NCBI RefSeq assembly: GCF_001194135.2 | Contig: NC_068982.1 | Coordinates: 41,847,398 to 41,911,397 of the forward strand | Reading direction: 5' to 3' | Length of the DNA: 64,000 bases | From: Octopus bimaculoides | Lineage: Eukaryota | Part shown: positions 4,020-63,631 of the stretch, piece by piece | How the letters are laid out: every line of letters starts with the position of its first letter | Position numbering within the stretch: the first letter of the stretch is position 1 | Translations under genes and position numbers: made by a program | The notes under the pieces: model-generated | What the model was told of the DNA's origin: nothing | The model's database searches: none | The model's input: the letters and a program-made list of their open reading frames with translations, nothing else

Positions 4020-5410
4020 TGAGGGTTGATTATATCAAGAAGAGCATCCAAGGCATAGAAAATCTGCCTCAATAAATTTTGTTCAGACGGAGACGAATTG
4101 GAGTGAGGTGGCAGACAGGGTGGCCAGCCTAACTTGGACCTGGTCCGGAAGGGCGCTATCCCTGAAAGGGAGGGTGGAGGTAGTACAGGTGTATATTGCA
4201 TCTGTTATCACCTACTGTCTGACTGTTGTCCGTTGCTCTGATTCATGGTTAAACAAGTTGGAATGTCTTCTCTTATGCTTTTTGTGGAGGGGAGGGAAAC
4301 CGCTTGTGAGGTGCTCCATCTGCTGCTAAAAACCACTAAAGGGTGTGTTAGGGATGCTGTGGCTGATGATGTGTAGACATGTGCTGAGACTGAGGCACCT
4401 CTGGCTCTACCTGGAAGGTGAACAGGTGTGGAATCCGCTGGCAGAAACGTTCTTTCCATGATGGGCCTCAGACAAGTTTAAACCCAGTTTCATAAAAAGA
4501 CATAACCTGACTGAATGGCAAAAAGAGTGCCGACAAGTACTCATGCTAATCCACAATGTGGGCAAGGCCAGCAGCGGGCGGGAGTACCACCTCAATACTC
4601 TATAGCGGGCTAGTAGAGTTTAAGAGGGATGACATCCTAGGAGAGGCTCTAGGGCTCAATGAGGGCCAGTTAGCCAACCTGTTCAAAAGAACTTTTGGGC
4701 CAGGGTACCTGGATAACTACCTGAAGTCTCTGGCCTGGCAGTGCTATAGAAGTACTTTACCTGTTTGCGATAAACCATCTAGGCATGGAATGTCTGTGCC
4801 ACCGGCATGCTCAAGGTGTGGGCAGGATGATGAGACTGTTCTGCATTCCTTTGTTCAGTGTCTGGAGCTTTCGGGCTTAATAATTTACGCAGAACACATC
4901 CTGTCGCATCTGGGAAGAGTACAGCTATCAGCTGAGTCCATGATTAAGATTACGCTGCCACCCAGACTGTCAAAGGAAGGTAAGGCGTGTTTCTTATGCA
5001 CAATTGCAGTACTGAAAGAGTGTATATGGAAATCTAGAATGAAAGGAGTAGCGACGGGAACATTCATCTCTGGCCCTGGCTTGCTATACTACTTCAGATA
5101 TCATCTGAAAAGTAAGATAGGGCTGGAAAAAAGACACATGTCACAAAGTGGGAAAAGACATCTGTTGCAAAGTGGAAAAAGATGGAAGGATGTGGAAAGA
5201 AAGTTGAAGGTGAATGACCCTGCTTAATCTCAACCATAGTAAAATAGTATGGTGTAGCCAGTGGACTTGATGGCCAAGGTTTAAAAATTTTTAATTAGAT
5301 TTAAATATGTCATCATATTTTTAAAACTCATTTATGAACCCATGAACACTTTTTGTTTGTGATGTCCTGTATTTTCCTCTCTATGTCCAATAAATATTAT
5401 CATAATAAAG
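4020..5410 (+). mobile_element. 5'-truncated Tx1/L1-clade LINE, ORF2 C-terminus with zinc-binding region
   Basis: WSGRALSLKGRVEV..., FLWRGG and LAWQCY...CSRCGQDDETVLHSFVQC motifs; frameshifts; AATAAA at the 3' end. Confidence 0.85.
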
Positions 5411-12846: not shown

Positions 12847-15355
12847 TATAGGAGATTGAGCAATAATGTAGAAGCTCAGTCATTGGTTCATAGTCATCAT
12901 TTTTACACCTGTTTTTCACTTGTAGTATAAAGTAAAAATTTTACTAATTTATCAATTTTTAAAAAGTCATTTTCAAATTTCATTGTAGGTGACCTGCAAA
13001 ACTAATTTATGAAACAACAAAGAAAAAATTTCAAGTTTACATATTTATTTATTTATTTATTACAAAATGATTTATTCAAAATATATGGCAAATTCAATAT
13101 TTAAAAAAAAAAAACAGTCAGCCTGCTACTGGAATTTACAATCTAGCCAACCTACCATTAAATTAAAGGAAACATGGACTGCCATAATTTTTATAAATAT
13201 TTCCGATCACATTGAAATAATTGCATTTTATGGTTGGCTGCAAAAACTGCAATTTTCCCATTTTTAATGCATATTTTTATTTCCCTTCCATTCTTCTGCC
13301 CTTTTCATTGCCTAATTTTATTCTACATAATTGATGTTTTATAAATAATTGCATTTACACTTTGAGATGACAGAAGATGAAAAGTTATGATTTCCTTTGT
13401 TTTTATTTAAGCATTCTGTTGCTATGTTTCTAATGAAATGCATTGCTGATGTTTCAAATAATTTTCTAAATAATCAAGAATTTGGAGGAATTCAGAAGAA
13501 TAACCAACTATTTCATCATTAACACCCTTTGGTCATGATGTTTCTGTTGAAATACATTACTAGTCTTTGAATTAATTTTGAAAATAATGAAAAATTTATC
13601 AGTATAACATTGCAATTATTATGCTGGTGTTTGGAACATAAATTAACATAAAATTTTGAATAAGTATTTTATTTTTGATCTCTATAAAACAAAATTTTGG
13701 CAATAAGAAACATTTGCACTGGTTCTATTTTACTTCTTTTTATTAAATCAACTAGTTAACAAATTAAGCAATTAACAAATTGTTTGATTAATGATTTGAT
13801 CCCTCAATCAATATGTTAGTTTGTCAGAGTTTGATTGCCGCTATTTGTTATCTTATCAATGACATTGGATACAAGACAGGTCGGGAGTAACAAGGGATCA
13901 TCACTGAAGAGGTTGCAAGTGATGACAACTGGACTGACAAACTAACTAATTGATTGATTGAATGATTGATTGAATGATTAATCAAGTAGATGATTAGTTT
14001 ATTAGTTAATGAGTTAATCAGTTGACTAATAACATTAAAAAATGTACAACAGAATGAAAGCAAGTATTTCTTATTGATAAAATGACTCTCTCAAGAAACA
14101 ATAAAGTAAAGTACAAAAATTGTTTAACCCTTTTACTGCAGAAATCAGATATATCTACTCAAAAATTTCATTACTTTAACTGTGGAAAGCAGTTTTATAT
14201 ACCAATTGTCTTTTGTTGAGGAATATCATGTTTTGAAACAATTTTTATTGAATTTATTGAGGCAATGTGAATTGCAGAAAATACCAATCTGTTTCTGGGT
14301 TGATAACCAAAATCAATACAGGAATAACCATGAAATTTAATTTTGCAGTTGAAGGATTAAAAAAAAAAATCATAAAGACAGATTTTCATGACCACCTCAA
14401 TAAATTAATAGTTTTAAAGGTAGAGAAAGCTAGCTAACCATAAATCCTTCCATAATTTACGATCATAAAAAAAGGAAGGACATATGATAATGCAGCTCTA
14501 GATATGGAATGAGATGACTAAGTATAGCTGTTTGAAGGCTGATGATTTGACATGGCTGACTGGACACTCAATCTGTATTGGGAACAATATTTTTTGGTGT
14601 TGGAGGCAAACATAAACACACACGTGCATATGGAGAGAGAGAGAGAGAGATTACAATTTATTTATGGGACATGATTGACATAAACACTTTCCCTCTCTTC
14701 ATACACATCAAGAGAAATATACTCACACACATAAAGTGAGAGAAATAAAGACAGAGGGAAGGAGAGAGAAGAAGAGAGGAAGGGAAAGAGGAGGAGGAGA
14801 CCAAGAGAACGATTAAAAGGTCTGATGTCAAATAAGTCAGTGTTGATTCAGCAAAATGTCTTTGCCAAAATGCCTCATACTTCATTAGATACTCAGTAAC
14901 TGAAAAAAATAGATAGGATGGTCGCAACTGAAATAACTTTTATTCATAAGTCTGATTGATCATGAATGAGCAGGAGTTAAACAACAACATTGATCAATTA
15001 CATTGTCTGCTCTTGAGGAGTTGTACTTGTTGAAAGTTTGAAACATGGTATTTTTTTTAAGATGTCAAAAAACCCCAAATATGTGACTGTCGTTGTTTTA
15101 AATACATAAGGATATTACCACATGGTGATATGGGATGAAAAATGTTAAGAAAGTCATTGGTTTCATCAAGGAAAATGTTAAAAGGTGTTGGAATTAGCAA
15201 ACTAATGTTTAACATTTTCCATTAGACTTTTTGACCAAACACATTCAAAGAATGAGAAGGAGATACTTAGAAGTCATTGGCCTGGTCAAAATATAACTTA
15301 GGATTATTAGAATGTAAGCATTCAAGAGCATACACAAACACACACACACACACAT

Positions 15356-15408
<53 letters not shown>

Positions 15409-15454
15409 GATGGCTCCGTACAAATTTTCTTGAAAACTTTATTTCCTAATGGCT

Positions 15455-15559
15455 TCAGGTTAGGGAACCATATCCAAATAAAGGATTTGTCCAAACTTTT
15501 GTTCCATCAGGTTTCATGTTGATCATTGATCCATAAAAGGCCAGTTGACTGCAATTTTT
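15455..15559 (-). CDS. FERM-only protein terminal coding exon 9 (KNCSQLAFYGSMINMKPDGTKVWTNPLFGYGSLT*)
   Basis: Acceptor attctctttcag|, phase 0 matching exon 8, 34 open codons then TGA; candidate AATAAA on the minus strand near 14938-14943. Confidence 0.72.
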   Translation of the reverse strand, partial: KNCSQLAFYGSMINMKPDGTKVWTNPLFGYGSLT

Positions 15560-15984
15560 CTGAAAGAGAATGCATACATTAATAAAAACAGCAATAGTAA
15601 TTATAACAATATCACATTAATAATATTGATTTTTAATTAGTAATAACAACATCTGAGATAACTGTTAATTCTTTTCAAAACTACTTAACAATTAAATTGA
15701 TGATATTCATCATCATCATCATCATCATCAACATCGTTTAACGTCCGCTTTCCATGCTAGCATGGGTTGGACGACTTGACTGAGGACTGGTGAAACCGGA
15801 TGGCAACACCAGGCTCCAATCTAAATTTGGCAGAGTTTCTACAGCTGGATGCCCTTCCTAACGCCAACCACTCAGAGAGTGTAGTAGGTGCTTTTACGTG
15901 TCACCTGCACGAAGGCCAGTCAGGCGATACTGGCAACGGCCATGCTCGAAATGGTGGCCACGCTCAATAATTGACAAGTTTCTG

Positions 15985-16730: not shown

Positions 16731-18199
16731 TTTAAAGACTTTCAATATGGCATGAGAAGTTCACTATGTTAGAATACATGTCTAACTGCATTAGGATTTT
16801 TACTGCCATACTTAGCAAGAGAATTTGTTAAACATAAAAAAAGAATAGAATTAAAAAAAAAACTAATGATGGGCTTGTGTTGATAATAAGTAAGTGTAAG
16901 TTTAAAGTGGAATTAATTTGGTTTGTCAGGAGGAAAAAGAAAAGTTTAACACTTTATCATTCAGCTATGAAGGATCTTGTCTGAAATACTAGATTTATCT
17001 TTTTTATTTTACAGCAAACAAATTTGTTACTCCATTTTGACCCACTTAAGGACATAAGAAAAATTGCTTTATATCAAAAATGCTTTTAACTCTTTCATGA
17101 TATTTCTAATTAGATATACATTACCCATGTGTTTTAATTCATTTTGAAAATAATCAAGAATTTGGAAAGATTTAGTAAAATGAATAATTTTAACATTATC
17201 AAACTGGTATTTGAAATATAACGTAACAAAAGTTTTGACATAAATTTATGTTGGAAAATTTTATTTAGATACAAATAATTTGTGCCATTGAACCAGAAAC
17301 AATCTCAGATGGTCTGACATAAAAAAAAAGTTGAAAAACAAAGGTGTGAAAAAAATATTTTAAAACAGGACTGGTGAAGAAAAGGAAAATTTTAGGTGTT
17401 GAAAAGAGATATAAACAGAAATGATATGAAGCAGTGAAATCAAAATCTTTAAAATTTCATTGTTGCAAAATATTTCAGCAGCAATGTAGTATGAGAGTTA
17501 AGACAAATCTTATTGTAGAGTAGAATGTTAGGGGATTAATTTGGATCATATATTGGAGTGTCAATGAACAAAATAAGTAAATTCATTCTTGAGACTTACA
17601 GTTAATCTGGACATTAACTGCAAATTTGCATATGGCACAATGACAGTGATAGGGACAAAGGAGAACAAGTTCTCCCAGAGTTACACTTCTACATAGTTGT
17701 TCAGCCTGCTAGAATTAGCAGTCAAATCTCCCTTAAATCACACCCTACCCTCTCAAAAAAAAAAAAAAAAAGACATATCGGATAATGTAGTGTCAGGTAC
17801 ACTTATTAGCATACCATGTTATTCTACCCATAACCATCTTAAAGATGAGATGGTTATGGGTTGAATGCTTTTGATCATAGTTTCACTGAACCAGGGCTGA
17901 TTAGGGTTAAGTAATAACAACAATGACACATTAACTCTTTTGATACCATATTCCTGTTGAAATATCACTCTTTAATTCAGTTAATTTTGGAAATAATGAA
18001 GAGTTTAGAAAAGTTAAAATAACTTTGTCATTAGTAAGATGATGTTTGAAACAGAAATGAACATGAAATTTTGAAAGAAGGCTTTAATTTAGATCACTTT
18101 AAAACAGGAAGTTTGTATCAAAGGGCCAGGGACAGTCTCAGGTGGGCTGGTACTAAAAGAGTTAATTAAACGATATAAAAAAGATAACTCTCTATTTAC

Positions 18200-18399
18200 C
18201 TGGATACTTTTAACAATGTCATGGGTGGTAGATAAAAGGTCATCAAGCTGCTTGCTCTCAACACAAATGCGTTTTTCTTCTCGAAACATATTATTTGCTT
18301 GATCATCTTTATGTAACACTGTGTAGGTGAATATTGCTCCAGAATGATCTATAGACCACTGTTTAACACTACTCCATGAGACAGAAACTGAATCTTCGT
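18200..18399 (-). CDS. FERM-only protein exon 8 (EDSVSVSWSSVKQWSIDHSGAIFTY...DIVKSIQ), F3/PTB-like lobe
   Basis: Acceptor ttactttcag|, donor CAG|gtaaat, 200 nt, phase 1 to 0; WxxxxxW pattern matches SNX27 FEWDEMQRWDTD. Confidence 0.9.
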
Positions 18400-20321
18400 C
18401 TGAAAGTAATATGAATTAAATCTCACTGAACATAATCTGTATCCATGATAATTATTTTCCTCAATTTAAAATTATTACTGTATTTTCCAGCATACAAAGT
18501 GAACTTTTCAAACCAAAATTTACAGCCAAAAAATGTAGGTGGATTTATACCTCAAGACAACTTTGGAGGACCCAAAGTTCCCTGTGAAATGCAGTAGGAT
18601 TTGGGAAGATAGTGACAATGTTTAAATGTTTACAGTACATGTTTACACTATCTGCTGCATTGACTTGTATACCAGAAAATCTGAAAACACATTTTTGATA
18701 GCACAAAAAAAATGCATAACATTAGTTTAAAATTTTGGCACAAAGACAGCAAGTTTTAGAGGAGGGGGTAAGTCAATTACATCGACCCCAGTGCTCAACA
18801 GGTACTTATTTTATTAACCCTCAAAGGATGAAAGGCAAAGTTGAACATGGCAGAATTTGAACTCAGAGTGTAAAGACATGAAATGCCACTAAGCAGTTTG
18901 TCTGACATGCTAATGATTAATTATGCATAATATTGTAAAATGAGCAATTAAACACAAAATAAATGTTTCATAGGATTTTGATAGATACAATTTGCACACC
19001 TACAAAACACCATAGAATAACAGATTAATACATTTTGTAAGTGTAAGCATTTATTTTATAATTGGTTGTAAGGCAACAACAGGTAGAAATTTAGAGTGAT
19101 GGAAAAAATGCTCAATGGCATTTTTTCCAACAATTTATGTTCTGAGTTCAAATCCTGCCAAAGTCAACTTTGCCTTTCATCCTTATGGGGTCAATAAAAT
19201 TAAAGTACCAGTCAAATGCTGGGGGGTTCAATTGTATAGACCCAGTACTCACTAATCACATGCCTAAATCAGAAACACTAATACACTATTTATTGATTGT
19301 AGATGAATGTATTTGATAAAAGGTCAAATTACATTCTTTCACAGCACACAAATGCATTTAATTTTGTGGATATATTACCTGATGATCTACCAATACCAGT
19401 GATGATCTGTAGATCATTGCTAGTTTTCATGGAGCTGAGCTGAGTTATTCCTCTTATTTTATATGGCATGAAATGTATTGCACTTTCTGAATGAGATGTT
19501 TCTACTTACTTTGCAAGAAGTACTGAGAAAGTGTTGAAGTGGAGCAAGATTATCTTCTACTACCACCATGGTTAAGATAATAGCATTTATTCTGCTTAAA
19601 AGCTATTGCCTGACTAGCTATAAATGTTGTTGATAATGAAAGTGTCAAACAGAGAGAGCCTCAACATGGTCACTTGAATTGTTAGAAGTAATAGCTAAAT
19701 CTTCCTCACATCATACCCTTCAGTTTAAAAAATATCAGCCATCACTAGTTTTTTTGGAGTGAGCTTTATTTACTATCCTTTCATTAATAATAGTAGTTTA
19801 GTTGAGACATTTCACTTATTCTTCATGGTATAAAAATGTATTCCACCATTTGAAATAAAATCATAACCCTATGTATACAATGCTTAAAAGTAAGATGAGA
19901 TGACCATAGTTGGAACTCCTTCACTGATAGGTCTACCTGATCAGGCTGACTTTAAGTTAAACGACAACAGTGAAACTGTTTCTCATTGGTGATTTTCAAC
20001 AACATTATTTATACATTCTTAAACATTTTCTGAACTATTTGTCGATAAAGTGTACCACAATTTAAACATGTGTTCATTTTATAAAATGATGTCTACATTA
20101 AATGTTCAATTTATATTATTTCTATATTTAAAGTATGTCATTTTAAGTTGCCAGAGCAGATAGTAGATGTAACTCATTTCAAAACCTACTGAAATTCTCA
20201 ATAGGTTAAAAAGCAAGTCAGTTTAACAAAAGCCTCTACATTTTTTTTTTTTGTATTTCTGTGACAGATCAACCTGAGTTTTTCTGCCCTTCAAAATTAA
20301 AATAATGATATAAATTCTTAC

Positions 20322-20382
20322 CTGTTATTATGCACAAACCTTTCTGTGATAGTGTGACTTTACAGGGGTTTCCTAAATGATT
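20322..20382 (-). CDS. FERM-only protein exon 7 (NHLGNPCKVTLSQKGLCIIT-D)
   Basis: Acceptor cttcttttctag|, donor CAG|gtaaga, 61 nt, phase 0 to 1. Confidence 0.88.
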
Positions 20383-21282
20383 CTAGAAAAGAAGTAAAGA
20401 AGAAACTAAATAAAGAATTTGGGAAATCACAACTTAAGAAACTGAATAAAGAATTCTGGGAAATATTTAAGTTCTAGTTCTTTATTAAATAACTTTATAT
20501 TAATTTTGGGAAAGACTTTCTTTCCTTCTCTACTGTCCTATCATCCTATTTGCATTACTTTTGCTGCCAAAGGCACCCCTTCTATATGTATCACATCAAA
20601 TTTCTCTCTCATTATAAACAACTATCTCTCTGTTTGCCTTCCTCTGATATCTTGTCTACAACCTTTAATTACATTCCTTGACAAATTCTCTGTTCTTTCA
20701 ACTCAACCAACTCAGAAGCTGAAAGGATATTCTGCATATCTTAAAAACACATCACAAAATTATGGATTTTCTGGCATACAAGTTGACATAGTATATCAAG
20801 TAAACATTTAGTATAAGCATTCAAACATCACCACTATCTTTCCAAATCCTGCTGCATTTCATAAAGAACTTTTGTCCCTCAAAATTATCTTGGTGTATAA
20901 ATCAACCTTCCATTTTGGGATGTAAATTTTGGTCTGAAAAATTTGACTTGTGTGCCAGAAAATATACTAACTTTTTCTTTAACAAAACAGTTCAGTTTTC
21001 CTAAGTTCATCTTTTTAAATCACAATAACATGCATTCATATATCATATGCATTTATTTCATAGTAATATGCATTCATCAAAATTAATGAAAAAAAAAAAA
21101 AACTCTTGCAAATATATCATGAAGCTTACATTATATTTAGTAGTTCTAAACAGCGAGGTCCATTAATCTCAAATCTTAGAAAATTATGATGAAACCAAAA
21201 TTGATGTAAAAGAGTAGCATTCATCCCTCCCAGCTATACCAAATACTAGACCTAAAAGATGTTAGAAATAACAATGAGTTAC

Positions 21283-21401
21283 CGTGAAAACAGAAGACTG
21301 CTTGGACAGAAAACAGTTATCTATGACAACGATATTATAACCAGCAAGGCGTTGACAAAGTCTCACAAAAGCTGATTTAGAACAATTCAAACTGGATAAC
21401 T
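21283..21401 (-). CDS. FERM-only protein exon 6 (LSSLNCSKSAFVRLCQRLAGYNIVVIDNCFLSKQSSVFT), F2/F3 junction
   Basis: Acceptor ttctattttcag|, donor ACG|gtaact, 119 nt, phase 1 to 0; RLAGYN corresponds to SNX27 TCEGYN. Confidence 0.9.
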
Positions 21402-22430: not shown

Positions 22431-22472
22431 CATCTAGAGCAATCTGTTCCTCAATACTTGCAGTTAAGTGAC
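22431..22472 (-). CDS. FERM-only protein exon 5 (HLTASIEEQIALD-E)
   Basis: Acceptor ctgtttttcag|, donor ATG|gtaagt, 42 nt, phase 1 to 1. Confidence 0.85.
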
Positions 22473-25451: not shown

Positions 25452-25562
25452 CAATTTGTAAGTCGTGAAGCGCTTGGTAATAAATAAGATCACAAGTTAC
25501 GTCATCTTCCAAAAGTTGGTTTTCTATGTCCAAATCAAAACACCATTTATAGAGGAATAAAT
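25452..25562 (-). CDS. FERM-only protein exon 4 (LFLYKWCFDLDIENQLLEDDVTCDLIYYQALHDLQI-G), F2 lobe
   Basis: Acceptor tgtttcag|, donor TTG|gtaagt, 111 nt, phase 1 to 1; aligns by eye to SNX27 IRKWLFTTEEE...FFHQAVDDVKKG. Confidence 0.9.
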
Positions 25563-29281: not shown

Positions 29282-29665
29282 ATGCTGATGTCAGGATAGT
29301 GAGAACTCTGGTCTAAGCCTCTGGATGATAGAGAATTCATAAGACACTGATGGGGTGAAATTTTGAAAAGATTTAAAAAAAAAGATCCTTGCAGTTGGGG
29401 TAAGCTAAGCAGAATATTTCTTGCTGGCCAGGCAAATTTGGTAAGTCTGAAAACTTTGTTTTGGCTGCTTGCACTAATGATCATAATAACAAATTTTGAT
29501 CAGAAGTGCTCACATAATTCTGATGAATCTGCCTTGCTTACCCCAACTGCAAAGATTTTTAAAATCTTTTGAAATTTTGCCACAAAGGGTCTTACCAATT
29601 CTATATCATCCTGGGGCATTAGATCAGTCAATAGACTAGAGTTCTTACTGTGCTAATATCAGCAT
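29282..29665. repeat. Long imperfect inverted repeat (about 140-bp arms) in intron 3 of the FERM gene
   Basis: Perfect 17-bp core TTGCAGTTGGGGTAAGC (29389-29405) / GCTTACCCCAACTGCAA (29536-29552); the flanks align. Confidence 0.85.
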
Positions 29666-29732: not shown

Positions 29733-29834
29733 CTTGGCAAGAAGATGGAACGTAATCAGTGAGTTTCAGTTTTTGAGTTGGTTTTCGTTTACCCATCATG
29801 ACAGCGAAATAACAGTGGTACTTCTTATTTACAC
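29733..29834 (-). CDS. FERM-only protein exon 3 (VNKKYHCYFAVMMGKRKPTQKLKLTDYVPSSCQ-D), end of F1
   Basis: Acceptor gttctattccag|, donor AAG|gtaatt, 102 nt, phase 1 to 1; YF and KL spacing resembles the SNX F1 lobe. Confidence 0.85.
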
Positions 29835-32556: not shown

Positions 32557-32626
32557 CGATTTTGTCAAGTACTTTTTTATGCAGATCCTCAACAAGAACT
32601 TGGTTATCGATTTCACGTAGAACCAC
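32557..32626 (-). CDS. FERM-only protein exon 2 (VVLREIDNQVLVEDLHKKVLDKI-G), F1/RA-like lobe
   Basis: Acceptor ttttcttttag|, donor CG|gtaata, 70 nt, phase 0 to 1, open frame. Confidence 0.85.
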
Positions 32627-43745: not shown

Positions 43746-43811
43746 TTTAACACTGGCATCTTTTGCGGCAAAATATCCCACAGAAACTGATGTTAAACTA
43801 TCGAGCTCCAT
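43746..43811 (-). CDS. SNX17/27/31-type FERM-only protein, coding exon 1 (MELDSLTSVSVGYFAAKDASVK)
   Basis: ATG at 43811 with an in-frame TGA 12 codons upstream; strong donor AAA|GTAAGT; phase 0 matches exon 2; lies in a CpG-richer region. Confidence 0.75.
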
Positions 43812-45074: not shown

Positions 45075-46823
45075 ATTACATAGAGAGGGACACTACAATA
45101 CATGTGGGGACATATAACAATTAAAATAAAAATATGATACTATGAATGACATGAAAATGAACATGAAAAACATTAAAATCAAAATATTAAAATAATGATA
45201 CATGACTGATAACTTGAGAAATGAGAATATGAAAAGTGTGTTACTCACCCCACACTGGGTAACACCACTTGCCAGCTCTGAGTCCTGAGTCCTCTTTAGT
45301 CTTTGATCTAGTCTTTCGTTTACCGTTTTCCCCATTACTGAGTGACAACACTCTCTCCTCCATCTACATGTAACCTTTTTCACCGGGGGAGGGGTCTTNN
45401 NNNNNNNNNNNNNNNNNNNNNNNNNNNNNNNNNNNNNNNNNNNNNNNNNNNNNNNNNNNNNNNNNNNNNNNNNNNNNNNNNNNNNNNNNNNNNNNNNNNN
45501 NNNNNNNNNNNNNNNNNNNNNNNNNNNNNNNNNNNNNNNNNNNNNNNNNNNNNNNNNNNNNNNNNNNNNNNNNNNNNNNNNNNNNNNNNNNNNNNNNNNN
45601 NNNNNNNNNNNNNNNNNNNNNNNNNNNNNNNNNNNNNNNNNNNNNNNNNNNNNNNNNNNNNNNNNNNNNNNNNNNNNNNNNNNNNNNNNNNNNNNNNNNN
45701 NNNNNNNNNNNNNNNNNNNNNNNNNNNNNNNNNNNNNNNNNNNNNNNNNNNNNNNNNNNNNNNNNNNNNNNNNNNNNNNNNNNGGGGAGGGTGGGTCTGA
45801 GTGGTCTTGGGTGGGATGGAATTGGTCTGGGGTCCCACATCTCACTGACTGTTCTTCCTCTTCTTTCTCTTTTTCCTTTTATTCTCTGTCACTGTTCCAT
45901 TCATTCTCCTTGTTTCTTCCATCTATCTGTACTTCTTCCTTTTTCTTCTCCGTCTCCAGCACCGCTTCTTCTGTTGTTTCCCTCTGTAGAGGGCAGTGAG
46001 CTCTAATGTGGCCTTTCTGGCCACATTTAAAGCCTCGCGGAACTCTGCCCTCTACCCATACTCTCAATACTATTTCTCTGCCAAATTTTCCAGCTGCTTT
46101 GCCTCCACTTGTATGATGATTTCCAATGTTTTTCCTTTATATCCTCCTTCCTCCGTCTCTGTGGCTTGGAGGACAGCCACCTCCTCCTCACTACCAACGA
46201 GGACGGTTGCCGCAACCCAAGCCACTTCTATATCAGGTGGGATTCTTCTACCTTCATCTTAGAAATCTTTCTTCCAAGGTACGTGGGTAGAAGTATCACT
46301 TCCTCTGTTCTCACCGTTATACTCGCCAGCCTCTTTGCCTCCTCTACTGTCCTAAACTGGACAACCACCGTCCCATATCCATTTCCTTTCGCTATGTATG
46401 TCACTTCCTTCGAAAGCCCCTTCAAAGCTTTTTTCTACTTTTCCCATTTCCATCTGCTCCACCTTCCTACTCTCCACTGAGTACACCTTGTAGGTAATGG
46501 TCTTCTTTTCCATATTTTCCATAACCCTTTTCGGGGATAATAACTTTACGTCACCCCACCCCCCTTCTGTGTCATCTTACACAACTCCTTCAGTCTGGCT
46601 AGATCCACCTCCCTTTCCTTCACCTCTGCAGCCTCAGCAAAACTCTTTACTCTTTTCAAATGCTCGTCCATTCTATTTACCGCCTTAATGAGGTCCTCTT
46701 CCACTGAGGACAGCTCATACGCACTAAGGCCCGAATACACTTACCAACAAACTGCTGCCAAGCAGCTCGAAAAATTCCGTCTGTCTCATCAAAAATCAAC
46801 ACAGCGAATAGACCGACACATGT
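45075..46823 (-). mobile_element. Tx1/L1-clade LINE: ORF1 remnant with zinc knuckle plus 3' end
   Basis: GFKCGQKGHIRAHCP (degenerate CCHC), RRM-like VVVQFRTVEEA; 3' tail resembles the end of the 4020-5410 element; gap at 45399-45783. Confidence 0.7.
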
Positions 46824-55600: not shown

Positions 55601-58600
55601 ACAAAAAGCAAAGTCTGAAAGAATAATCATCATTTCCTTTGATTTGTAGATAGAAGCCAATAGGAAATAACACTGACCAAAGACAAAAAAAAAAAAAAAA
55701 TATTGGTACAGTGTTATCAAATAGATCCATACTGTATATTCTGGTATACAAGTTGACATGATATATAGTTTAACTCTTTAACATTTAAACTGGCCATATC
55801 CGGACGAAATATTCTACCAGCTTTATTTTCAAACTGGCCAGATTCAGCCTCTTATCCTAAAATATTATTCTAGAAATAAACAATCACGTCATTGAAATCT
55901 CAAAGCTACAAAGTAATGCATAACTAATTCGAAATAATGTTTATAAAAAAAGCATTATATTTGATAGAGAAATCTGAATACTAAATGTTTAAACATTCAA
56001 ACGCTGTCGCTATCTTTCCAAATCCTGATGCATTTCATATGAAATTTTTGGTCCTCCAAAGTCATCTTGGTGTATAAATCAACTCACCTCATTTTGGCTC
56101 TGAGTTTTGGTCTGGAAACTTTTGGCTTGTATGTTGGAAAATGTAGCTTTTTTTGTTCTTGTTTTGAATGTGATGAAAGTATGTTCAAGATCGAAGTCTG
56201 TTTCCATTTGGTATTCAAAACATAATTCTAAACAGCTGTTTAGTAGATAAAAGCAGCCTCATATTGGCATATGGCAGATAACGCAAACATGATTATAAAT
56301 TAATAAAGTAAGCCAAATTAAATCTATGATAAGCTAAATTAAGTCTATGTCAGTGCAATAATTTAGGTCCAACACAAAGCAAAGAAAAAGTAAATAGGTC
56401 AAACACAAGGCAAAATAGGCACAAAACAAAAGGAGGAAAAAGTTAATGCAGTTATGCTGTGGAGGAAGAAAATCAATGTTTTGAACAGTTGCTCTTTATC
56501 AAGACAGGAGAAATAAAAGAAAAAATATTGGAAGGTAAAAATAACACAATGTTAAGTCAGAGATGCAAAATGTTTGAATAGTAGGAAGTGAGAGGAGTAA
56601 GAATGTTTTTCAGCATAGAAAAATAAGCAGTAGGGAAAGTAAACATGACAGCCATGAGCGGGTGTAGTAGAGTAAAGTATGTTTATGTATATGTGAGAAT
56701 GAAATGTAATAAAGTATATTTAAAATTGTGTGAGCAAATATTGAGAGTAGTGTTTTAATATATATACACAATAGTGAGGAATAGATGTATGGTGGTGTGG
56801 TATGATGTTACTGGGTAGTGTGAGCAAGACATAGTGTATAGTGGACACGTATTACAGTGTGTCAGAGTGTATGAGTCTGCTCCTGTAACAACACTTGTTC
56901 TTTTATTCAGGACACCACCATCCTATCTGCACCTAGGTCAATTTTCCAGGTTATGGAATGCTTCACTAGCTTCTCCAAAAATGTCATGTACTACATTAAA
57001 AACCAACCTGGTAGCTTACTGCATATAGAGGAAATGATTGATCATTTTAATATTTGTTGGATGTCCAATGCAACAACATTAGGTCACTTAGGCCTGAGAT
57101 TTGTCACTTCCATTCTTGAAGACAGTTTCATGTCGCTGTTTGTAACATATAACACCATGGGGCTCCTATTTCTTGGTTTCATTATAAATAACAATGTTCT
57201 GCTGAAACACAGCTGCTGGCATTAATAACTTATATTTCTCTAAAACACTTTTCACACAAATAAATACCAATATCTGCACTTCACAACTTTTCTATCCATA
57301 TCCTTTACAACCCATCTCTATAGCCTACTCATATGGCTTACTACTATCACCACATCTATATTCCTTTCTATTGCATTCATACACACACATGTACATAAAC
57401 ATACTTCACCATATGTTTTCCATGCTTATTTTCCTTACCTCACAGCCACTCTTCTATGCTGAAAAATAACTTTTACTTCACTCACTTTCTGTCTGTCATT
57501 TAAAAATGTTGCATCTCTGACACCCAACATCATGTCTTTTACCAATTTTTTAGTTCCCATCTTCATCCTTTAGCTCTAACAAAGGGTAATTGTATGAAAT
57601 ATCCTTTCTTTCAAAGGAACAAAATTGAATTTTTATTCATTTTTGTTTTTCTGTTTTGCTCAAGATTTATCCACAAATTTACAAAATCTTGCAAAGCATA
57701 AACATGCATAAAACAATTATTTTTCAGCTGTGAATAGATTGCCAAAACAATTAGCCCAAATTGAGAATTGCTTACAGAGTTAAATAGCATTATGCAGTTT
57801 ACTCCCAACAAATAAATAACACCTGTATTTTGTTGCCATTAAACATTATTAGTTTGTCTTAACATAAAAAGAGATAAACAATAGAATCTGATGCCTGTTC
57901 TGAATTGCTAATTTTAGCATCAGACAAAGCATTGGATTTAAAACATACAAAAGAATTAGGAGTTGTGTCATTTGCACAAGGGTGAAGGGATTAGTAAAGA
58001 CTCTCATAAAAAGATAGAAAGATGACAGGTCTTAGGGAACAATAATGGTAATCTCTCAATCCAAGAAAGACAGTTCTGTAATTTCTGCAGAACAACTTGC
58101 ACAGATGATTTATTTATTGTGATCAAATGTTTGTGTTACACATAAGCATGTTACCTTCATCAAATTGACATTGCCTGTATAGGTACATGGTGTGCCACAT
58201 GTCAGATGTCAAAGTAATTGCAGAGCAACATGAGATGAAGTATTTTGTTCACCACAATGCACCGTCTGGTCTGAGAATCAGACCTACGATCTTGCAATCT
58301 TAAGTGCCACAACCTAATTACTAGGTCACATGTCCTCACTAAACAAACAAAAGAGTTGATATCCACTTTTAATATTAACATAATCATGAAATGATCATTG
58401 AAGACATTTTAAACCCATATAGACATTCTACAAAGAAAACAACAAAAACAAAATAAGCAGGCTACATTTAGTCAAAGGCTTTGCTATTATCAGATGTAAT
58501 ATAAAGCCTTCATTTTGTTGTAGTTTTCTAAAAGCATCATTATCCTCATCACCCTTGTTTCAATCTCTACTTTTCCATGCTTGCATAGGTTTGACAAGGG

Positions 58601-61346: not shown

Positions 61347-61827
61347 TCACTTCGTTTTCTTTTTCCTGGGTTTCCAGGCTTTGATTAATTGTATAGAGAA
61401 ATATAAGCCTAGCCCATGGATTTGTGCTGAGATAGCCAAAAACATAAACCAGATAAGAACAGCAGGAAAACCAAGCATCTTGGATGATTGTTGTTTATTC
61501 ATGATGTAATCATAAAAGTCATCTCCTTGATCAACAAATCCATATAGGACAGGTAAAACTCCAAACACAACACTACCAATAATGTATTGTTTAATGAGGA
61601 TTGTGTCGTTCTTAGCCATTGCTTTCCATCCCAAGTAGGCAGATAATGAGCTTATGAACCAGATGTATTCCCATGGTCTGGCATTTGGGACATCCCATTT
61701 GCGAATTGATTCTAGAGATGATGTCCCCAGGAAGGCAACCAAGCAGGGCAGAAGGCGTATAAACATGAGAATGGATAGCATCGAGTGTATAACAATATCA
61801 AACTTCAGCCGAGACTTATTTATGCAA
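61347..61827 (-). CDS. JAGN1: Protein jagunal homolog, last coding exon (CINKSRLKFD...PWEYIWFISS...QIHGLGLYFSIQLIKAWKPRKKKTK*)
   Basis: Recognisable jagunal motifs (WEY, QIHG..YF...L..AW, C-terminal KKxK ER-retrieval signal); acceptor ttttgtttttcag| with a phase-2 Ser codon; exon 1 lies outside the window. Confidence 0.92.
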
Positions 61828-63631
61828 CTGAAAAACAAAAAAAAAAAAAAAGCAAGCAAGTTAATTGGAGTAAAATTTGAAACATAAAAAATGATTTAGA
61901 AAAATAAGTTAACTCGTAATATATATTAAAAAAATGTGACAAAAGATTCTACCTCAGGTGAACTCAACTAAAACAATAAAGACAAATACATACATATATG
62001 CAAACAAACCCATTATCATTGGTCATCATTGTCTAAGATCCATCTTTCATGCTACCATGAGCTGGACGGTTTGATAGGAGTTGTTAGGCTAGAAGACTGT
62101 GCCAAGCTCTTCTGTCAGCTTTGGCAGGATTTCTATGGTTGGATGTCCTTACTAATGCCAACCACTTTACACAGTATACTGGGTGCATTTTCGAGGACAC
62201 CAGCACTAGCAAGGTTACCAAGTAACTTGCAAGTGATGAGAGGTTAGTGTATGACAGAGGCCTTGCAGTAGAGGAGGTACATGGCTACCTCATACACACA
62301 CACATATGCATGCACATGCTGGAGAGCTGTACCAGGTTGCAATTGTCTCTTTTGGCATGGTTTCTATGGCTGGATGCCCTTCCTAAAGACAACAACCTTA
62401 GAGTGGACTGGCTGCTTTTTACATGCCACTGGCACACACACACATATATGTATATAAATGAGAGAGAGAGAGAGAGAGGGGGGAGGAGAGAATGTAAATG
62501 TTGCATTCCAAATACTTTTACACATTTTTAAAGCATAAATTGCAATTAGGAGAAATGTGCATTGTAAAACTCAGCTACTAGTTTGAGATTTTGTGTCTTA
62601 GACTTTCAAATGCTGTAGATGTTAGCAAGATCTTTCTTTTCATATCTTCCAATCAATTTGGTACAACAGTCAGAAGACACAAATTGTGCAGCATATTCTA
62701 CTTCAGAGCAATCCAATGTGAACATTTCCTTGCAAAGTGACATATTCTTGCCTGATTGCATCATTTATTTTCATACTCCAATTATTATTATTTTTATTTA
62801 CATGCTTTACCTAATTGTTTAGTGGATATTTTCAATTTGTCAAAGATACTAAGGTTGCATCACCAACATATCTAATATCTACTGATAGTATTTATGAATG
62901 CCAGATTTTATCCACATCTTTTAGTTCATTTATGACAAATTCTAGGAAGATCTCAAAGTGGTTGGGAAAAGCATGCAACCCTATCTGAGATCCATATGTA
63001 CTTCAAATCAATCTGTTAGCGGATGTTCCATGACTACAGCAAACCTATATAATTTGCACTATCTTTAGGCGTAGATATTCTAGAGGGCCTTAGTTTCTTC
63101 TGCCATATTATTTGAAAGGGAGCTGTAATGCAGGAAAATGTGCACAATAATATAAGGCTCTTATTGCACAGGTATCTTCTGCAATGTTGATCTTGGACCC
63201 CTAAAATGTATGCCAACAGGAATATATCTGAATGTGCTTGAAAGCTTCTAGCTATGTTTCAGTAGCAAATGAGTGAGAAAATTAAATATAAACAATTCTT
63301 TCAACAATGCTAAAAGTAGAGAATAAAACAAAATAGATGATTGTTTGATGTCAAGCCTTTTTGATACCAACTCATTTGAGACTGCTTTGGGTTCTATGAT
63401 ACAAACTACCTGTTTTAAAGTTATCTGCGTTAGAAACTTGTATGAAAATTTAATATTTATGCTCCAATCATTGGTTTAATAACGACAAAGTTATTTTTAT
63501 TAAATTCTTTATTATGCTCAAAATTAAATAAAATAAAAAAAAAAAATTTCAGCAGGAATATGGCAATAAGAGGGTTAAGTCAGTGATATAACTTAGTACC
63601 AGACACTTTCCACTGAAAGACAAATAAGTTA

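Follow-up and report, generated by a model that had tools for sequence, protein, structure and literature searches.

In the F3 lobe, strand 5 and the C-terminal helix flank a groove in which SNX17 and SNX27 receive cargo tails of the form Phi-x-N-x-x-[Y/F]; in SNX17 this groove is also the site of NFAF, a sequence from the tail of the protein itself. Bound peptides of the Phi-x-N-x-x-[Y/F] type form a strand just ahead of the Asn, which augments strand 5 of F3.

In SNX17, NFAF is an intramolecular ligand of the groove and the last Leu of the protein is the anchor for Retriever (PMC11339278, PMC11589680). Replacement of NFAF by AAAA was found to increase cargo binding, and the substitutions W321A, V380D and M384E to decrease cargo binding and increase Retriever binding (PMC11339278). 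The Retriever motif of SNX17, SNX31 and LRMDA (RICT) was defined as [ILF]-x-acidic3-Leu over the last six residues (PMC11589680), and autoinhibition by an own NxxF tail was described in 2024 as specific to SNX17, SNX31 and LRMDA being without it (PMC11339278; PMC11589680). The NPLF sequence of another protein, KRIT1 (residues 231-234), binds the F3 lobe of SNX17 (PMC9309484; PDB 4tkn), in agreement with a first-pass annotation of the octopus locus described here, which had cited it as an SNX17 ligand. That annotation had also stated how SNX17 ends, and the ending N[FY]AFEGIGD[ED]DL is indeed seen in vertebrate SNX17: it was found in all 20 C-termini inspected (every sixth of 120) and is invariant in a 20-sequence alignment (A1), and [ILF]-x-acidic3-L was satisfied by 119 of the 120 sequences.

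Here we compare with these systems the protein encoded by LOC106880541 of Octopus bimaculoides, which carries an N-P-L-F motif in its own C-terminal tail.

Results and discussion

Gene model and terminal exon

The window, by which we mean the whole 64-kb stretch of DNA analysed and in whose coordinates all positions are given, has ~33% G+C and contains CA and TA microsatellites and assembly gaps. LOC106880541 lies on its minus strand and is annotated as 'uncharacterized / FERM domain-containing', the UniRef name of its product (P0122) being 'FERM domain-containing protein'. The product has 291 residues and the C-terminus ...DGTKVWTNPLFGYGSLT followed by the stop. A tblastn search with P0122 placed nine of nine exons on the minus strand at 100% identity. 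The exon boundaries were set by an exhaustive GT-AG search, which gave a single solution whose translation equals P0122, and the joined CDS of the nine GT-AG exons reproduces XP_014786013.1 / P0122 (isoform X1) residue for residue. The features of the gene are as follows.

43746-43811, minus strand: exon 1, with the ATG at 43809-43811; MELDSLTSVSVGYFAAKDASVK; unique GT-AG solution, tblastn 100%
32557-32626, minus strand: exon 2, in which the F1 lobe begins; VVLREIDNQVLVEDLHKKVLDKI; tblastn and GT-AG
29733-29834, minus strand: exon 3, F1 lobe; an internal Met (MMGKRKP) is the start of isoform X2
25452-25562, minus strand: exon 4, in which the F2 lobe begins; DLFLYKWCFDLDIENQLLEDDVTCDLIYYQALHDLQI; tblastn and GT-AG
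22431-22472, minus strand: exon 5, F2; HLTASIEEQIALD; tblastn and GT-AG
21283-21401, minus strand: exon 6, end of F2 and strand 1 of F3; tblastn and GT-AG
20322-20382, minus strand: exon 7, strands 2-3 of F3; NHLGNPCKVTLSQKGLCIIT; tblastn and GT-AG
18200-18399, minus strand: exon 8, strands 4-7 and helix of F3, with W199, W205, Q241, V253 and I256
15455-15559, minus strand: exon 9 (terminal), KNCSQLAFYGSMINMKPDGTKVWTNPLFGYGSLT and the stop at 15455-15457; tblastn and GT-AG
15476-15538, minus strand: conserved tail module F265-F285, F-x-x-S-M-I-x4-D-G-x3-W-x-N-x-L-F, from the column counts of the family alignment A4
15476-15493, minus strand: Phi-x-N-x-x-F motif W280-T-N-P-L-F285, with NPLF at 15476-15487
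15438-15443, minus strand: AATAAA polyadenylation signal, 12 nt past the stop codon

Exon 9 had been taken as the last exon from the letters alone, and it is the annotated terminal exon, ninth of nine, with a canonical acceptor (tgcattctctttcag / AAAAAT). Translation of 15455-15562 on the minus strand gives QKNCSQLAFYGSMINMKPDGTKVWTNPLFGYGSLT up to the stop codon at 15455-15457 and bears out the position first reported for NPLF, 15476-15487. The tail is thus confirmed as the end of the LOC106880541 protein. A long (CA)n microsatellite at 15325-15410 sets in ~45 nt past the stop codon, a little way after the AATAAA, and bounds a very short 3' UTR.

Isoform X2 of LOC106880541 (P0121) has 234 residues. 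The octopus tail VWTNPLFGYGSLT, up to the stop, is identical in O. vulgaris and in isoforms X1, X4 and X5 of O. sinensis, and the Argonauta hians orthologue (P0123; 292 residues, 72% identical to P0122) ends in VWSNPLFGYYLPT, which contains WSNPLFGY. The conservation of NPLF in orthologues, proposed earlier as a check on the tail, is thereby seen in three Octopus species and in Argonauta. A 49% identical cephalopod relative (P0179; Logan SRR24189501, a 951-nt contig) is a polyadenylated mRNA with the end IWSNPLNS before the stop; here the tail exon is transcribed, and Asn takes the place of the aromatic residue in the motif. In isoform X2 of O. sinensis (P0127), as annotated, exon 9 is replaced by a short alternative end, ILQVLGDPCK, and the tail is absent. 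This alternative last exon was not found in the 64-kb window, and the minus strand of the window holds no alternative terminal ORF with an acidic-Leu end. Isoform X3 of O. sinensis (P0125) is a read-through of intron 7 (window 20239-20322, directly after exon 7); in O. bimaculoides the same read-through reaches a stop after GKNLYHYFNFEGQKNSG.

Elsewhere in the window, the upstream neighbour gene of LOC106880541 on the same strand is a homologue of Jagunal (JAGN1), of which an ORF at 61350-61895 (minus strand) covers the C-terminal two-thirds (PF07086, E = 1.5e-34, profile 46-187). Retroelement fragments lie at 4550-5224 (plus strand) and at 45882-46740 (minus strand), the latter upstream of exon 1 and adjoining assembly gaps. 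One ORF contains zf-RVT (E = 2.3e-7), and Gag-like retroelement ORFs show a weak CCHC zinc knuckle (E = 0.004). Dispersed repeat copies were located at 20811-20966, 18482-18632 (inverted) and 55987-56145 and, as a matching pair, at 17931-18158 and 63359-63578, some of them within introns; the ORF of one repeat, (E/D)(G/D)QKF(F/H)MKC(S/I)RIWKDS, mimics the SNX17 F3 segment REGSFRVTRMRCWRVTSS. Self-comparison showed the ORFs of a supposed second paralogue at 55-64 kb (FMKC[SI]RIWKDS etc.) to be such repeat copies, and this candidate was discarded. Also rejected was an 'F1' exon at ~29300-29650 (minus strand), which could be assembled only by assuming a 40-nt intron and a frameshift, the true exons 2 and 3 lying elsewhere. 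The intronic ORF fragments of that interval align to the SNX17 F1 lobe above shuffled controls (p ~0.005-0.01), which may be due to chance and post-hoc selection. A candidate exon at 23020-22951 was picked after the fact with a shuffle p of 0.005-0.01 and was wrong, the true exon 5 being at 22431-22472.

A stand-alone FERM protein of the SNX17/SNX27 class

The LOC106880541 protein consists of an F1-F2-F3 FERM domain, about residues 5-258, with 22 residues ahead of F1, followed by the short conserved tail. Searched against the PDB, the profile of its family (alignment A4, 30 sequences) matched the SNX27 FERM domain at E = 1.1e-23 across F1-F3 and the SNX17 FERM domain at E = 2.7e-15, and hhalign of A4 with the vertebrate SNX17 alignment gave a probability of 98.5% (E = 2.5e-15). 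By sequence the FERM domain is therefore closer to SNX27 than to SNX17. In a Foldseek search with the AlphaFold2 model, the top six matches were SNX17/SNX27 FERM structures (E ~1e-13 to 1e-14, TM 0.66-0.80), including 4tkn (best), 7ct1, 4gxb and 8ttt, and all other FERM domains (ezrin, merlin, KRIT1, talin and the rest) followed at E ~2.6e-9 or weaker.

The F3 homology is visible only with the family profile, exons 8 and 9 as single sequences showing no similarity to SNX17. With P0122 alone, Pfam returned SNX17-31_F2_FERM for residues 89-149 (E = 2.4e-5) at 24.6 bits, below the curated cut-off of 27, and a human SNX17 query (99% identical to P0001) gave only weak colinear matches to the window, at 25.5 kb and 21.3 kb. 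No PX domain was matched by Pfam in P0122 or P0123, the SNX17 HMM found no PX-like ORF among those of the window (best E = 10), and the LOC106880541 protein contains no PDZ domain. We conclude that it is a soluble, stand-alone atypical FERM protein of the SNX17/SNX27 class, and that the lack of a PX domain excludes it from the sorting nexins. The profile and Foldseek results, together with retention of the groove Trp of F3, agree with the SNX17-class FERM proposed in the first-pass annotation.

An unnamed FERM-only family

The protein belongs to an unnamed family, most members of which have ~280-300 residues and are similar from end to end. A HMMER scan of 1.84 billion cluster representatives, with a two-sequence profile as the query, returned 50 proteins at E < 1e-3 and 28 at E < 1e-10, most of them spanning residues 1-287. 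Readable source names place members in the molluscs Haliotis, Patella, Bulinus, Tegillarca, Ostrea, Mytilus and Lottia (a fusion) and, outside the molluscs, in Owenia (annelid), the echinoderms Anneissia and Lytechinus, Glandiceps (hemichordate), Branchiostoma (amphioxus) and the sponge Corticium. ENA and Logan sequences are also included, and no vertebrate occurs among the members with readable source names. The protein names that could be read are all 'uncharacterized' or 'hypothetical', with one Branchiostoma label 'sorting nexin-27-like'.

One homologue, P0158 (304 residues; L002 3001-3915, ENA ERZ25069786), is a single intronless gene on a gene-dense, compact 826-kb contig, which suggests that it comes from a unicellular eukaryote. 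The tail of the P0158 group reads D-P-L-x-E-F-[VI]-N-x-x-L-F-G...F-S-[SA]-[IL], with an N-to-F spacing of four.

Many deuterostome and some other members (P0137, P0139, P0142, P0150, P0152, P0153 and P0156) carry a second short C-terminal motif, [Y/C]-x-[DE]-[LI]-[ST], ~15-25 residues past N-x-L-F. Examples, each ending at the stop codon, are YTDLSA, YIDLSTLT and YVEISMLR; the octopus proteins end before that position.

Conservation of the tail motif

All column counts given as x/30 refer to the 30-sequence alignment A4. In this alignment the tail has the signature F-x-x-S-M-[IV]-x4-[DE]-G-x3-W-x-N-x-L-[FY], and the conservation of this C-terminal module equals that of the domain core. The conserved positions, in P0122 numbering, are as follows.

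F265: 22/30
S268: 18/30
M269: 16/30
D/E275: 24/30
G276: 19/30
W280: 20/30
N282: 26/30
L284: 20/30
F/Y285: 27/30

The Pro of NPLF is not general: 4 of the 30 sequences have P in its column, whereas V and A are each found in 7. Exceptions to the motif are one family member with His in place of the aromatic residue and the group of homologues with N-x-x-x-F spacing. In random 33-residue tails of the same composition, Phi-x-N-x-x-[FY] arises in 3.6% and NPx[FY] in 0.16%. At a random rate of 3.6% a single occurrence of the motif proves little, and the weight of the argument rests on its conservation. That same rate is what could be said for a chance motif without function, but column-wise conservation across phyla contradicts this explanation, which we consider extremely improbable. 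In the aligned sequences the tail motif is confirmed to be conserved far beyond chance, from sponge to amphioxus.

The relation of this tail to that of SNX17 was a separate matter. Both proteins have an N-x-x-F sequence C-terminal to a FERM domain of the same class, and the G-Y-G of the octopus tail is loosely like the E-G-I-G of SNX17, so that the tail might be a degenerate homologue of the SNX17 NFAFEGIGDEDL tail whose Retriever-binding end was lost. We judge this very unlikely. Comparison of the tail profile with that of the SNX17 tail gave no similarity (P 0.3-0.85), and the positions past 285, after the Phe, are variable (G 8/30, Y 4/30, G 4/30); the 'NxxF-G-hydrophobic-G' resemblance to SNX17 initially put forward is not upheld by these results, and the likeness of G-Y-G to E-G-I-G is, as far as the sequences indicate, probably a coincidence. 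The full-length profile alignment pairs S-M-I...D-G of the family with SNX17 394-403, the segment that immediately follows the F3 helix, and the family motif, ~21 residues past that helix, corresponds to SNX17 394-412 and not to SNX17 459-462. Since the N-x-x-F motifs are ~50 residues out of register, that of the family is analogous, and not demonstrably homologous, to that of SNX17. The greater proximity of the FERM domain to SNX27 also speaks against descent of the tail from SNX17, as does the absence of the Retriever motif from every family member. The octopus end G-Y-G-S-L-T fails [ILF]-x-acidic3-L as well, and the lack of an acidic, Leu-terminated Retriever end had been recognised at first pass.

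Groove residues and predicted structure of the tail

By profile alignment, W205 corresponds to W321 of SNX17 and is present in 29 of the 30 family sequences, V253 corresponds to V380 in a column that is hydrophobic in 30/30, and the counterpart of SNX17 M384 is Q257. AlphaFold2 with A4 gave a model with a pLDDT of 92.8 and a pTM of 0.87. Within the tail the pLDDT was 87 for residues 261-270, 97 for 271-280 and 83 for 281-290, the internal loop 221-230 having a value of 61; this confidence derives from the 30-sequence alignment and is that of a prediction, a two-sequence alignment having given an unusable model (pLDDT 37.5). Strands were predicted at 270-272 and 278-281, the second directly preceding N282 and the N-P-L-F turn. 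A strand at 278-281 before N282 is the geometry expected for beta-augmentation. The sequence W-T-N-P-L-F also resembles F-T-N-A-A-F of P-selectin, which we take to be the peptide bound to SNX17 in 4gxb.

An ordered tail could, in principle, pack elsewhere on the FERM domain. It would then be an integral structural hairpin held off the cargo groove (e.g. on F1/F2 or the far face of F3), with N-x-L-F acting as a tight turn and a hydrophobic anchor. Such a hairpin would suit the very high pLDDT, the short tether and the conservation of the whole 21-residue module beyond N-x-x-F, and in the relative ending in WSNPLNS the aromatic residue appears dispensable. However, the motif is an exact Phi-x-N-x-x-[FY] consensus, the groove Trp is near-invariant, and the predicted strand stands immediately ahead of the Asn, as it does in bound cargo peptides; we therefore regard packing away from the groove as unlikely.

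The predicted order of the tail bears equally on whether the motif is read in trans by the F3/PTB domain of SNX17, SNX27 or a Dab/Numb-type adaptor, which would make the FERM protein a passenger, bridge or competitive decoy; binding of SNX17/27 in trans as a decoy had been the other option put forward in the first-pass annotation. Exposed linear motifs are normally predicted to be disordered, whereas this one is ordered at a pLDDT of 83-97, and a simple trans motif would not need the conserved hairpin upstream of it. We accordingly hold a role in trans to be distinctly unlikely, even though SNX17 binds soluble proteins via NPxF, for example through the NPLF of KRIT1 (PMC9309484; PDB 4tkn), the tail is placed at the extreme C-terminus, and a tail-less isoform is annotated in O. 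sinensis.

Proposed mechanism

The best reading of the evidence, and one that we consider somewhat probable, is that the tail is a pseudo-cargo which occupies or gates the protein's own F3 groove in cis. The tail would fold back as a small beta-hairpin formed by I270-M272 and K278-T281. This hairpin would add a strand to F3 beside strand 5 (V202-I207) and would bring N282-P-L-F285, as a turn, into the groove flanked by strand 5 and the C-terminal helix. Pairing with strand 5 and entry of F285 into the groove are what we infer from the predicted hairpin, and displacement of the tail by cargo, together with any cell-biological role, would be a further step of the same reasoning. With a tether of ~21 residues, against ~70 in SNX17, the closed state should be the default. 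As the protein has neither an [ILF]-x-acidic3-Leu end nor a PX domain, opening of the groove would not bring in Retriever, nor would it tether the protein to membranes that carry PI3P.

For the family as a whole we tentatively raise the possibility that it is an ancient group of soluble FERM-only relatives of SNX27 and SNX17, in which a tightly tethered pseudo-cargo hairpin gates the NPxY/NxxF groove, and which is possibly also present, as an intronless copy, in a unicellular eukaryote. If this is true, self-occupation of the groove arose independently of, or before, the NFAF switch of SNX17, and the family would read NPxY-type sorting signals, or compete with them, independently of Retriever and of membranes. 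If the tail sits in the groove, the protein would offer a natural minimal model, made of a FERM domain and its self-ligand, for competition between cargo and a built-in ligand, and might, as a soluble protein, regulate NPxY-dependent recycling in invertebrates. Should the tail sit elsewhere, a new and conserved protein family is still cleanly defined.

Comparison with known systems

The head-to-tail autoinhibition of ERM proteins, in which the C-ERMAD masks a surface of the FERM domain, follows the same general principle. Unlike the octopus protein, ERM proteins belong to another FERM subclass and their masking segment is long and helical; Foldseek matches to them were weak, with ezrin (8xz0) at E = 2.6e-9 and radixin and moesin at ~1e-7 to 1e-8. 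KRIT1 shares the tetrapeptide N-P-L-F with the octopus tail, and its complex 4tkn is the best Foldseek match of the octopus FERM model. Its motif, however, acts in trans on the FERM domain of another protein, and its own FERM domain is of another subclass (Foldseek E ~1e-8 to 1e-9).

To our knowledge, SNX27 has no C-terminal N-x-x-F tail. Its FERM domain (8ttt, 7ct1) is the closest relative of the octopus domain by sequence and one of the closest by fold, but SNX27 carries PDZ and PX domains, and the FERM complexes solved for it contain DLF and FAM21 LFa-type peptides.

SNX17 and the octopus protein are alike in having an N-x-x-F sequence C-terminal to a FERM domain of the same class and in the conservation of the groove Trp. 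The AlphaFold2 prediction of the octopus tail is, moreover, evidence of the same kind as that from which the mechanism in SNX17 was first proposed. The octopus protein differs in having neither a PX domain nor the IGDEDL Retriever motif and in its tether of ~21 instead of ~70 residues; its motif is preceded by a conserved predicted hairpin, lies at a non-equivalent alignment position and is known here from sequence and a model. The family is another lineage of this FERM class, with an organisation of its own and no named or studied member, in which a Phi-x-N-x-x-F motif is held on a much shorter leash.
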